A DNA stretch of 64,000 nucleotides. Source: Macrostomum hystrix (taxonomy: Eukaryota; Animalia; Platyhelminthes). The notes beneath the pieces were generated by a model. It was not told the origin of the DNA and did not search any database. It saw only the letters and a list, made by a program, of their open reading frames with translations. Positions within the stretch are counted from its first letter, which is position 1. The number at the start of each line of letters is the position of its first letter. The stretch covers positions 13,516,001-13,580,000 of the forward strand of contig CATNEN010000001.1 in assembly GCA_950097015.1 (NCBI GenBank), read 5' to 3'. Made by a program: the position numbers and the translations under genes. Below are positions 11,210 to 27,362 of the stretch, piece after piece.

Positions 11210-11801
11210 TTGTCTCATCTGCCTCGGCGTCATGCACGGACATTCTGTCGGCCATCTCGTTTGAGCCAGCAGTCGCAGTCACTGCTGGAGGCTCGTCCTC
11301 GACTATCACTAGCCGACCTTCTGGTGGGCTGAGCGAGCCGCGGTCTTGGGCGCTGGTTGCCGGTTCTGAGGTCTGGCTGGCCGGCATCGGAGTCGACATC
11401 AGCGCTGTCGCGACCTTCGGCTGCAGCTTGCGACTGCAGTCATCGGTGCGGCCGTATCGGTGCTCGAGCAAGGGGCGTCCGTCGTGTTTTTTTGCAGTGG
11501 TGGCGCGATTCGCAGCCAAATGGTGTGATTTCTCACTAGTGCGAACTGGGTGAGCAAAATAAACAAAGGGGGCAGGTGGCACACAAAGTGCGCACTCAAT
11601 GGAGGGGGTGGGGTGACTGCTAGACTAAAACAACAAGGACATGGGGAGAGAGAAACTGCAAAAATAAAACTAAAACAGGTGAGAATGTACAAAGGACACT
11701 ATCGGGAGCTTACTGGTGTACTTTAAAAGTACCCCCTTCAAGGAACGGGGTTGCACAAATCAAGGAACACTCAATGAATGTACCTCTCCACGGAAATCTT
11801 T
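11210..11801 (-). mobile_element. Unit C: degraded 5' remnant of the U5-associated LINE (U5 3' half, 5' UTR, start of ORF1)
   Basis: Colinear with the 5' ends of units A and B but more diverged; the ORF1 ATG has become TTG; homology is lost near 11210. Confidence 0.85.
11730..11801 (-). ncRNA. 3' half (72 nt) of U5 snRNA heading unit C
   Basis: AAAGATTTCCGTGGAGAGG...TGAGT, Sm-like ATTTGTG and 3' hairpin; two substitutions relative to the full U5, both at unpaired hairpin positions. Confidence 0.85.
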
Positions 11802-12224
11802 GTTGTTAAAACGAATTCCCCAAAGGACTGGGGCGCGGATCAGTTTCGAAAAACTCTACCGCTGAATTTTAAGATATATTTAACCGAATTTATTAAAAAT
11901 TTACAAGCGATTCGATTTAGATTATTTTATACGGATATCAAACATAGAAATTAGTAAATAATTAGTAAATAAGTAAATAAATGGATAATAAATATTTTAA
12001 TAAAAAAATAAATATAAAAGCTTGCAGTTTGTGAGCAAAGAGCAAAAGTGACAATACAGCCATTGGTACTCATAGGCAATAAAAGACATTAAGTCAGTAG
12101 GATAAGAGCGTAAAAAATGGAATGACAGAGCAGCTGAGCACTGCTCACCAGCCCACTAAAGCCCAGGCAGCTATTTAAATTTTATTTTGGTTTTTCTTTC
12201 AGGGCCATAGTTGTCAGAGACTGC

Positions 12225-15200
12225 TCAACCCTGGATTTGGAGTCGGTTCTGCCTGTTGATTTGTCCCCGCCTCAGGGTAGCCCACAGGACATTGAGGATG
12301 GGGACTCGGCCCGGAGCGCGAGGCAGCTCCGGCTCGATGTGGAAGCCGTGCAGCCGAGCTGCTCTCATCTTGAGCAGCCAGGCCACACCGAGCTGTTTGA
12401 CTCTGGCCGAGAGCATTGGCATGCCGGCCATTTTGTGAAGGTACTCGGTGCTCAGGTAGGAAGGCACACCGTAGCAGATTCGCAGAGCAAGGTTCTGGAT
12501 CTTTTGTAGCTTGATCTGGTTGGTGACGCAGATCAGAGTCAAGATTGGGGCGCCGTAGGTGAGAGCGCTCTCACCGTAGGCCCTGTACAGCATCTTGAGA
12601 GTGACGCTGCTCAGTTTGGTGATCTTGGCGATGCGGCACAGGGACATGACAATGGCCCTGCACGTGTTCGCCATGTTGTCGACGTGTTTGTTCAAACAAA
12701 GATTGGCGTCGAGGAGGACACCTAGAAATTTTACTTCCTGACAGTAGGGGACCTCCGTCTGTCCCAGCTGCAGTTTGGGTCGCAAGTTGGCGCGAGCTTT
12801 CGGCTTGTAGTTGAAGGCGATGGCCTTGCTCTTGTGGGCATTCAGTCTGATGCCTTGCTTTCCGCACCACTCCCAGACTTGTCTGAGGTAGCTCTGGAGG
12901 CATGTCCGCAGACCATCAAAGGTGTCTGCGGAGGCCCAGATGGCCATGTCGTCAGCAAATTGACTGCGTTTCACGTTTGGATTTTCAGGAATCGGCTTTG
13001 TGCTGACGTACAGCAGGTACAGGAGAGGACTCAAGATGCCTCCCTGAGGTACGCCAGCTAGGATTCTGATCAGCTCACTGAGCGAGTTGTTGACTCGCAC
13101 CTGGATGTACCTGTTCCTGAGGTAGTCAGACAGGATGCGCGTCAGCATCGAAGGAAAGCCAGCGTTGAGCATGCGGCTCCTGAGCATGTCGTGCCAGGCA
13201 GAGTCAAAGGCCGCCTCTACATCAAGGAAGACTGCAGCGGCCCTCTTTGCTTTGCACTTTGCGACCATCATGTCCTGCACCAGTCGGCACAGGTTGTCGT
13301 AGGTGGAGTGGACTTTGCGATAAGCGCATTGGTCATCGCCAAGAATGTTCTTGTCCTCAAGGTATTTGGAGAGTCTCTTGGCAATCAGCTTCTCAAACAC
13401 CTTGCCTAAGCAAGAGGTCAGGCTGATTGGCCTGTACGAGTTTGGATTGTCTGGCGGTTTGTCAGGCTTCGGGATCATTGTCACCACAGCTTTCTTCCAA
13501 GCGCTGGGGAAGATCCCTTGACTGAAGCAGGCGTTAAAGAGTTTGGTGATCCTGGTGTTCGCCACGCCTTCAAGGCCGAGGGTTTGAGCACTCGATTGGG
13601 AATCTTATCCAGCCCGGGTGCTCCATCAGGCTTGAGGTGCTCAAGCTCCCACACTGTGTCGGCTACAGTGAATGCGGCTTCAAGCGGGTGAGTGGCTATG
13701 CCATTGATGTCGGCCGGAATCGGATAGAAAGCGATGAACTTGGCCACTTCGGCCACCTCCTGTTTGAGCTGCTCGCAAGTGGATGGGACTGGGCGCATCT
13801 TTGAGTCCAGAGTGGCAGCGAGAAGGTTCGCTTTCTCCAGATCAGTGTGCGCACTGGTTTGACCCGAAGTGAGGGTTGGAATGGAGCTGGGCTTGAACTT
13901 GCCCATCAGCTTCCTGGTGTCATGCCAGAAGTTCTTGACCTTGCTGTTCTTGCTGTTCTCGACAACATTCTCACACAGCTTGGTGAGCTTGCCGCTCTGG
14001 AAGGAAGTGATTTCCCTTTTGATCCTGTTGGCCATTTGGTTGGCCAGCCTTTTAAAGTTTTCATCCCCGGTGCTGTTGAAGAGGCGTCTGAGTCGTCGGC
14101 GCTCTTTGATCAGCTCAAGGATGTGCTTGGGCAGAGCATTTCGGCCACCACAGTCTGGCACAGTCGACTCAATGACCGTGTGGATGGCCTTTGTGATGAG
14201 CTCGACCTCGGCGTCGATTTGCTGAGCACTCGATAGGCGAGTCGGCTGGTCAGGAAGAAGGGCTTCACTAATTCTCAGCCTGAACTGATCCCAGTCGGTT
14301 TTGGAAAAGTTTTTCGGCTTAGCGGGACCTGCCCACTTTGCCGACTGAATGTTGAGGGTGAGGATGATTGGCAGGTGGTCGCTGTCCAGGTCAGGACCGA
14401 CTGCAAAGTCCTGCACAAAGGGCAGAAAGTCCTCCGTGGCCAGGCCGAGGTCCAAGACATTCCTGGAAGTGACGCCATTCTTGGTGGCGATTCTGGTGAA
14501 CTGGCCAACTTGATTGAGGATGGTGGGCGAGGCCAGACCTTCAGAGAGCCAGTCGTACAGCTCATGGCCAGCCCTGTTGTTGCTGCTGTCACCGCCAAGG
14601 AAGCGATGTCTGGCATTGAGGTCGCCAAGGAGAACACTGCGTCTGCGCGAGACCAGGCTCTTGAGTAGGTTCAGGTTCAGGTGGTAAGGTGCCGGAGACC
14701 TGTACACCAGAGCCAGATTAAAGTCGGCACCGTGGGAGTTGTCAGACAGGCTGACAGTGCAGGAGATGGCTTCATGGTTCACATTGTCGTAGTGCAAGCG
14801 AACATTTGTGAGTTTGACGCGCGGTGAGTGAGCAAGGAGCAGGCCGCGTCTGACATGCGGAGTGTCGTATCGGATGATGGAGTAGCCAGGGATCTGGACC
14901 GTGTGCGAACTCTTGAGAATGGTTTCAGAGAAGAGAGCAATGTCTATCTCTTGACTAATGACCCATTGGGTGAGTTCTCTGCTTTTCGGGTGAAACCCTC
15001 TGCAGTTGAGGTGCATAATTTTCAGACCCGTTGTCTGGGTAATAGGGTTCCCATTTAAATTGAGGAATTTACAGTTTTCTGGTTTAGCTGCCTGGGCCCA
15101 CGACCACGGTGGCGGTGGAGGCCATGCCAGACACGTCCTGGAGGACAGCCCGCACAATGTCCTCAACCATTTTACTGGTCGATTCCACTGTGAGGAGCTC

Positions 15201-27026: not shown

Positions 27027-27243
27027 ATGGCGTGATTTCTCACTGGTGCAAGGTAAACAAAATAAGCAAAGGGGGCAGGTGGCACACAAAGTGCGCACTC
27101 AAGGGAGGGGGTGGGGGACTGCTAGACTAAAACTAAAACTAAAACTACAAGTACAGGGGGAGAGAGAGACTGCAAAAATAAAACTAAAACAGGTGAGAAT
27201 GAACAAGGAGCACTATAGGGAGCTTACTGGTGTACTTTAAAAG

Positions 27244-27362
27244 TACCCCCTTCTAGGAATGGGGTTGCACAAATCAAGGAACACTCAATGAATGTACCTC
27301 TCCACGGAAATCTTTAGTAAAAGGCGAAAGATTTAAGCGTGGAATGAAGAGAAACCAGAGTT
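27244..27362 (-). ncRNA. U5: U5 spliceosomal snRNA gene, full length (~119 nt)
   Basis: Minus strand reads AACTCTGGTTTCTCTTCA...TAAATCTTTCGCCTTTTACTAAAGATTTCCGTGGAGAGG...TGAGT: invariant loop 1 GCCUUUUAC closed by AAAUCUUU/AAAGAUUU, CCG internal loop, ACUC/GAGU basal stem, Sm-like site and 3' hairpin. Confidence 0.93.

Follow-up and report, generated by a model that had tools for sequence, protein, structure and literature searches.

A non-LTR retrotransposon fused to U5 snRNA genes, with a preferred insertion site at a fixed U5 base, in the flatworm Macrostomum hystrix

We analysed a 64,000-nucleotide (nt) stretch of the genome of Macrostomum hystrix (assembly GCA_950097015.1, 220 Mb in 42 contigs; the stretch, hereafter the window, is C1:13516001-13580000), which holds a tandem array of a long interspersed nuclear element (LINE) joined to a gene for U5 small nuclear RNA (snRNA). 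An earlier note on this DNA had described a full U5 gene running directly into the 5′ untranslated region (UTR) and first open reading frame (ORF1) of a LINE with an apurinic/apyrimidinic-type endonuclease (APE) and a reverse transcriptase (RT), and our analysis bears this out. A cmscan search of the window matched the U5 family RF00020 at 27363-27245 on the minus strand with 82.4 bits (gathering score 40; E = 1.4e-12), covering model positions 1-117, so the region passes the covariance-model check that the note had proposed; U5 was the sole Rfam family above threshold in the window. This full-length gene (27245-27363) heads the array. Its +1 position is probably the A at 27362, the A of AACUCUGG, and its 3′ half, starting from AAAGATTTCC (27245-27315 in the head gene), opens each unit of the array. 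Reading along the minus strand, which carries all features of the array, U5 is followed immediately by a 218-nt leader, and this in turn by a long ORF. The leader is the 5′ UTR of unit 1 (27027-27244); it is joined to the 3′ end of U5 and has no 3′-box-like motif.

Self-BLAST resolved the array into three units that share one starting U5 base, in agreement with the earlier description of three units opening with the same 72-nt U5 3′ half. Unit 1 runs from 27315 to 21048 (6268 nt) and unit 2 occupies 11802-21047 (9246 nt), with its U5 3′ half at 20976-21047 and the start codons of ORF1 and ORF2 at 20764 and 15016. Unit 3 (11212-11801, 91% identical to unit 2) comprises only the first 600 nt, namely the U5 3′ half, the 5′ UTR and the start of ORF1, and is followed by unrelated DNA. 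At both internal junctions (21047-21048 and 11801-11802) the LINE tail meets base A47 of U5 within the site ACT/AAAG, where the slash marks the point of insertion; the sequence reads ...TTTTAACAAC/AAAGATTTCCGTGGAGAGG at 21048/21047 and again at 11802/11801, so that the AACAAC tails of both full copies do join U5 at the same base, as had been claimed. The window holds three copies of the 19-mer AAAGATTTCCGTGGAGAGG, where chance alone would give 0.01, and the 5′ half of U5, including loop 1, occurs once. Unit 2 exceeds unit 1 by about 3 kb, the result of a foreign, 5′-truncated LINE with RT, RNase H and zf-RVT domains that is nested in the ORF1 of unit 2 (15812-18788, minus strand); this insert ends in a (CA)n tail and is flanked by a 12-13-nt target-site duplication (TSD), CGAGCCGGTCCG. 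A loose end at window position 26524 in run X2, from another sample, shows the same (CA)n-LINE tail at another position of ORF1.

The element is a recently active APE-RT LINE, with an APE followed by an RT in ORF2, variable 5′ truncation, TSDs and no long terminal repeats (LTRs). ORF1 of unit 1 (24330-27026, ATG at 27026) encodes 898 amino acids (aa), comprising, in order, an N-terminal region, an ALKBH3-like 2OG-Fe(II) oxygenase domain, an RGG-rich stretch and three CCHC knuckles. The oxygenase domain (25998-26411) matches Pfam PF13532 (E = 1e-22) and the PDB ALKBH3 entry 8jnr (E = 5e-23), with the HxD, H and RxxxxxR motifs readable, and the three CX2CX4HX4-6C motifs in the C-terminal part are those of gag-like CCHC proteins. 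ORF2 of unit 1 (21471-24262, ATG at 24262) encodes the endonuclease and RT recognised by Pfam. It is broken by a 2-nt insertion (CC) at 22827-22828, and unit 2 has the same frameshift and the same tail; both complete copies in the window are defective. The insertion is absent from the contigs of all four public runs found, which are small, come from one study and are stored as contigs. An uninterrupted ORF2 of 979 aa is present in at least nine genomic copies (for example L055:4681-7620), with PF14529/PF03372 at aa 51-268 and PF00078 at aa 564-816, the same domains as in the window copies. Within ORF2 there was no match to RNase H (PF00075) or zf-RVT, and its last 160 aa are free of Cys-His motifs. 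The 3′ UTR of unit 1 (21048-21470) ends in two hairpins (21064-21108) followed by the tail TTTTAACAAC. All copies examined end in this way, with no poly(A) run, and 16 distinct copies preserve the hairpins, in which a single pair covaries (C:G in 10, U:A in 6). An Rfam scan found no known ribozyme between U5 and ORF1 at E ≤ 1.

An exhaustive pattern search of the genome identified exactly eight intact U5 loop regions, and the covariance model returned the same eight loci. Seven of the eight have the LINE 5′ UTR directly behind U5; only the copy at C1:23711081 is free. Conversely, U5 sequence (...GAAGGGGGT) precedes the LINE 5′ UTR in 16 of 16 genomic copies with a constant joint, seven of them lying behind a full or nearly full U5 and nine behind a tail plus the U5 3′ half. 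The contigs of the four public runs bear out the sequence and likewise contain the joint between the U5 3′ end and the 5′ UTR. There are exactly nine tail/U5 junctions genome-wide, all at one base, distributed over three arrays on C1 (two), C12 (two) and C29 (five); the arrays on C12 and C29 were mapped from match coordinates, 3-kb loci and one 10-kb piece (L055). The heads of these arrays have unrelated upstream flanks, with nothing in common but the motif ACGAAAAnTAG at -71 and a T at -1. The fused U5 copies have one common 3′-half variant, which departs from the free U5 from about U5 position 68 onward, and we therefore conclude that the element overwrote that part in three genes. Of the four promoter-bearing U5 genes that we found, three end in the U5 3′ half of the element, with no 3′ box behind it.

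The units within an array differ in ways that bear on their origin. The C29 array consists of interleaved subfamilies whose UTRs differ by 15-20%, and units of one array may be 85% or 100% identical in the 5′ UTR and 80%, 90% or 94% identical at the 3′ end. In addition, unit 1 of the window and unit 2 of the C29 array, on another contig, are 99.55% identical over 4.3 kb. Because subfamilies are mixed within an array and near-identical units lie on different contigs, we consider the units to be separate insertions. The C12 array ends (L022, C12:3697626-3697790) in the tail, then AAAGATTTCGGTGGA, which is 15 nt of U5 with one mismatch and has the length of a normal TSD, and then unrelated sequence.

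Three full-length copies lie at sites other than U5, and in each of them the TSD encloses the whole of U5 plus the LINE. The copy on C25 has a 12-nt TSD, AAGGCCCATTGA, and the insert begins exactly with AACTCTGG, at the base that follows the conserved T of genuine U5 genes. The copies on C2 and C3 have TSDs of 14 nt (AAATATTACTAGCT) and 17 nt (AAAGACATACTAAAGAC), and in these U5 is truncated at its 5′ end by 5-7 nt. A further copy, on C38, is old and has lost its 3′ end, and no TSD can be read. Since TSDs of 12-17 nt enclose the whole of U5, we conclude that U5 from +1 is the 5′ end of the element RNA. The earlier note had offered two origins for the U5 3′ half, either carriage as the 5′ end of the element or duplication as a very long TSD; these copies support the former and speak against the latter.

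We found at least 15 distinct 3′ junctions of truncated copies at sites unrelated to U5. Eleven of the non-U5 junctions have detectable TSDs, of 9-15 nt, and the site consensus is (A)CT/AAA; overall, TSDs of 9-17 nt at 14 sites enclose inserts that range from 113 nt to full length. The U5 site, TTTTACT/AAAG at the 3′ edge of loop 1, fits this consensus. Nine of the ~30 3′ junctions examined are in U5, every one at ACT/AAAG, in three U5 genes with unrelated flanks; the proposal that the insertion point lies next to loop 1 is thus upheld by a base that stays fixed across three independent U5 genes. The genome is estimated, not counted, to hold ~10^4-10^5 ACTAAAG-like sites, eight of which are in U5. 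With at least 15 junctions and three full-length copies elsewhere, the element is far from having nearly all of its copies in the target, and U5 targeting is preferential, not exclusive. The earlier note was right about the single base, but its expectation that most junctions would abut it overstated the targeting. It had also said that insertions at unrelated sites with ordinary short TSDs, if they left this array as one chance insertion amplified by tandem duplication, would count against targeting. Such insertions do exist; the amplified accident is not what we found, as discussed below.

Two side observations concern the element's ends. Three ~400-nt inserts (L024, C34:4870288; L026, C30:4132601; L029, C2:3176149) are independent, with TSDs of 14-15 nt, and all start at one base, TTGCCTAGAAATG..., of a longer 3′ UTR variant; this is more suggestive of a distinct short derivative, or of a preferred place to stop, than of random truncation. 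Moreover, the tail TTCGTTTTAACAAC (21048-21061) resembles U5 just upstream of the cut, TTCGCCTTTTACT (27316-27331), as does the tail of a sister family, TTTTACTAC; the likeness may be due to chance or to target mimicry.

Upstream of the head U5, at a distance of 71 nt, lies ACGAAAACTAG (27424-27434, minus strand), which resembles a proximal sequence element. The motif ACGAAAAnTAG is found at the same distance in two U2 genes, one U4 gene and the U5 genes on C12 and C29, and, with one mismatch, in the free U5; we read it as the putative proximal snRNA promoter element. At the level of motifs, then, the element does sit under a U5 promoter, as had been suggested. The -71 motif was not found upstream of the U5 copies on C25, C3, C2 and C38. 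An A-rich motif resembling RCAAAAATAAA follows U2, U4 and the free U5 by a few bases and was not found behind the LINE-fused U5 copies; read-through would therefore be favoured at the latter. Of the three features looked for in the head gene, the 3′ box is the one that is missing, and the output of mature U5 from fused genes is uncertain. Hence, the statement that the host gene is not destroyed holds for its sequence, which is intact upstream of the LINE, and is uncertain for its function.

From the anatomy, junctions, TSDs, promoter motif and genome-wide counts we infer transcription from the U5 promoter, joining of the 5′ end by homology and a basis for the site preference. We consider it probable that this LINE resides behind U5 genes, produces an RNA with the whole of U5 as its leader, and re-inserts at a fixed base of U5 in a way that rebuilds the gene. 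Productive copies would lie behind genuine U5 genes, and read-through from the external U5 promoter element would yield an RNA that begins at U5 +1. The endonuclease, which would favour (A)CT/AAA, would nick the bottom strand at ACT/AAAG, and reverse transcription, primed at the nick, would begin from the AACAAC end of the element RNA and extend into the U5 leader. The top strand would be cut ~12-17 nt downstream, as at other sites; its 3′ end would then pair with the U5 part of the cDNA and prime the second strand, so that the 5′ junction is made by homology. The predicted product, in order, is one seamless U5, the new LINE, its tail and the old U5 3′ half, which is the structure observed in the arrays. 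Repeated insertion together with local unequal exchange would produce arrays, and the internal tail/AAAG joint could be reused in the same way; the order of units therefore need not reflect their age. At sites other than U5, the same RNA would give rise to 5′-truncated copies or to promoter-less full U5+LINE copies with ordinary TSDs.

Several observations weigh against this model or limit it. Units 1 and 2 of the window are identical over their last 2.3 kb, frameshift included, and 1-5% divergent further upstream; they have thus been partly homogenised locally, and part of the window array did not arise by insertion. The distal end is truncated or replaced in three of three arrays, and therefore no original U5 3′ flank survives as proof that the insertion struck a genuine gene. 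Outside the arrays there are five U5 copies (four promoter-less copies and the free U5), and not one of them has an insertion, which targeting purely by DNA sequence does not predict; these copies may simply be young, or the state of transcription or chromatin may matter. The promoter and 3′-box motifs were derived from only six to eight genes (six for the 3′ box). Finally, the start site and the read-through are deduced from DNA rather than from transcripts, and an internal promoter within U5 or the 5′ UTR is possible.

We weighed these points against four other accounts of the arrays. If the endonuclease imposed strict specificity for U5 and the 72-nt 3′ half were a very long TSD created by widely staggered nicks, one would expect the single base at nine of nine junctions and the same U5 3′ half at the start of every unit. 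The copies that hold the whole of U5 inside TSDs of 12-17 nt at non-U5 sites already contradict this account, because their U5 must be derived from RNA; with 11 other insertions flanked by 9-15-nt TSDs and at least 15 sites unrelated to U5, we give it hardly any credence. It is also improbable that one chance insertion in or behind a U5 gene was multiplied by tandem duplication and segmental spread, with no targeting at all. The identical 2.3-kb 3′ part of units 1 and 2 with its shared ORF2 frameshift, the many insertions elsewhere, and the ease with which unequal exchange between 72-nt U5 halves would lengthen an array all fit such a history. Against it, the three arrays lie on different contigs with upstream flanks that are unrelated save for the promoter motif, subfamilies that diverge by 15-20% are interleaved in one array, and units at different loci are near-identical (99.55% across contigs). 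The U5 insertions are therefore not one amplified accident. Furthermore, the family is demonstrably mobile, as its TSDs and intact ORFs attest, and U5 provides eight of an estimated ~10^4-10^5 ACTAAAG-like sites yet receives nine of ~30 junctions.

The other two accounts invoke events at the level of RNA or of recombination. The U5 loop 1 region is heavily modified in other species. An RT that halts at the 3′ edge of loop 1 and then resumes at the 3′ end of another element RNA would make each array a concatemer formed in a single event. The junction at a fixed position of a structured RNA and the head-to-tail joining of different subfamilies are in keeping with this, and template switching from LINE RNA to snRNA is documented for L1 and U6 (PMC4476161). 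However, each of the three or four U5+LINE insertions at random sites consists of one unit, arrays are confined to the promoter-bearing U5 genes, a first hit in a U5 gene would still be required, and nothing suggests that a read-through pre-mRNA carries the modifications; we regard this account as very unlikely. Alternatively, ectopic homologous recombination or gene conversion through U5 homology might have carried the arrays from one U5 gene to another, which would explain why the fused genes share one 3′-half variant unlike that of the free U5, and which gains from the loss of the distal array ends, where a second recombination joint would have been. The tail/AAAG joint, however, matches the endonuclease preference at unrelated sites, the C12 array ends in a tail plus only 15 nt of U5-like sequence, within the usual range of TSD sizes, and the family is active. 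Spread by recombination thus has, in our judgement, a small chance of being the explanation.

A separate question is whether the U5 leader is an adaptive module, serving promoter capture, snRNP-type routing or guiding, beyond being a by-product of read-through. We consider this conceivable and on balance doubtful. As such a module, the leader would allow the LINE to capture snRNA promoters and rebuild them at each insertion; the Sm site and snRNA-type 5′ end that it would give the RNA might route the ribonucleoprotein (RNP) through snRNP nuclear import; and it might pair with transcribed U5 genes and so guide the RNP, which would explain why only promoter-bearing U5 genes are hit. If the leader were adaptive, the host's U5 supply and the LINE would be mutually dependent.

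The earlier note had treated the element as Jockey-like; its domain architecture appears to fit the Jockey/CR1 group, not Tx1. As in Jockey, ORF2 has neither RNase H nor a Cys-His motif after the RT; the poly(A) tail of Jockey is lacking, its place being taken by the two hairpins and AACAAC-type tail, and the 3′ end looks more like those of the CR1 group. The L1-type ORF2 with a zf-RVT C-terminus that marks Tx1 is absent, whereas the nested foreign LINE does give a zf-RVT match. The nearest relatives of ORF2 in the database are P0001 and P0002 (56% and 45% identity), and PDB matches are only to the distant L1 and R2.

Site-specific LINEs that depend on the promoter of a host RNA gene include R1 and R2 in 28S rDNA, and SLACS, CZAR and CRE in the spliced-leader genes of trypanosomatids. 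Transcripts of R1/R2 and of the spliced-leader elements have upstream target sequence at their 5′ end, which aids formation of the 5′ junction by homology. All of these disrupt the host gene, and the target sequence that they carry lies entirely upstream of the insertion site. The U5 LINE differs in that it carries the gene in full, with the portion 3′ of the cut as well, and therefore restores a complete gene sequence; it differs also in inserting at many other sites. The U6-L1 chimeras of mammals are one-off products of template switching with variable, 5′-truncated L1 segments. Like the U5 LINE, these chimeric retrocopies place an snRNA 5′ of a LINE within one TSD (PMC4476161). We rejected a chimera of this type for the U5 LINE, since all 16 copies share one joint, ahead of a complete 5′ UTR and ORF1; unlike in U6-L1, the joint is passed on within a replicating family and is followed by a full-length element.

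As examples of snRNA-targeting LINEs, the earlier note had named Keno and Utopia, correctly, since passages of PMC4640811 describe both as targeting U2 snRNA genes, Keno being an APE element of the Tx1 clade and Utopia a member of a clade with a restriction-like endonuclease. According to those passages, the LINEs of snRNA genes reported up to that paper were only Keno and Utopia (U2), Dada-U1 and Dada-U6. The note's list omits a family of the Tx1 clade for which the Fig. 3 legend of Kojima 2015 (PMC4494074) names "U5 snRNA" as the target; judging from that legend, a LINE that targets U5 is not in itself a novelty. That family belongs to another clade, and the legend describes neither a U5 leader nor an AlkB ORF1. 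Keno and Utopia resemble the U5 LINE in being non-LTR elements that reside in spliceosomal snRNA genes of low copy number, in their precise 3′ junction and occasional tandem insertion, and in a specificity whose strength depends on the family; they differ in targeting U2 rather than U5, and the passages of PMC4640811 mention no complete target gene at the 5′ end and no regeneration of the gene. Utopia further differs from the U5 LINE, with its APE, in the type of endonuclease, and Keno belongs to the L1/Tx1 group, whereas ORF2 of the U5 LINE has a PF14529-type APE and no zf-RVT C-terminus. SINEU elements, with heads derived from U1 or U2, are likewise snRNA 5′ modules moved by LINE machinery, as far as parts of PMC4494074 describe them; SINEU are short and non-autonomous, whereas in the U5 LINE the snRNA head is on an autonomous LINE and doubles as the preferred target. 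Our literature searches found no LINE described with a complete target gene as its leader and regenerating that gene, and no AlkB domain described in a LINE ORF1; an AlkB domain is reported in orchid Ty3/Gypsy elements, in a passage of PMC9289625.

Related families in this genome provide a local comparison. Upstream of ORF1 in four other LINE families there was no Rfam match. The ALKBH3-like ORF1 domain, which recurs at many other loci, is common to several LINE families here whose ORF2 is 42-62% identical to that of the U5 LINE, and is therefore an old feature of the whole LINE group. A sister LINE (62% ORF2 identity; L067, L072, C39:12720700-12732300) occupies the spacer of a 5S rDNA tandem repeat of 927 bp, where it lies 487 nt downstream of a 5S gene and is not fused to it; its TSD measures 18 nt (TACTGCGAAGACTCTCTT) and its tail is TTTTACTAC. 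A second copy lies 10.6 kb away at the same position of the 5S spacer. Another AlkB-ORF1 LINE (43% ORF2 identity; L065, L066, L060; C17:37900-45500, also on C42) lies ~300 nt downstream of U1 within an 11.6-kb repeat and is not fused to U1.

Beside the array, the window contains host genes and a satellite. Exons of AP-3 delta adaptin lie at 31538-36821 on the plus strand (Adaptin_N, E = 5e-112; AP3D1 domain), and an exon of the xanthine/uracil permease family lies at 4412-5599 on the minus strand. A satellite with a 31-nt unit forms ~82 tandem copies, 92-98% identical to one another, at 43909-46500 (plus strand).

R1/R2, the spliced-leader elements and Keno/Utopia have been the main models for persistence at a safe site with a borrowed host promoter, in which the host copy is sacrificed. 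The U5 LINE would carry its whole target gene in its own RNA and restore the complete gene sequence each time, and it occupies seven of the eight U5 copies of the genome. An AlkB-type demethylase domain in ORF1 is its second unusual feature. The family may thus offer a tractable system in which to study the joining of a LINE 5′ end by homology, an snRNA (Integrator-dependent) promoter that would yield a 6-kb mRNA, and the possible takeover by a parasite of the supply of an essential spliceosomal RNA, and its fixed insertion site in U5 is of possible interest for targeted gene insertion.

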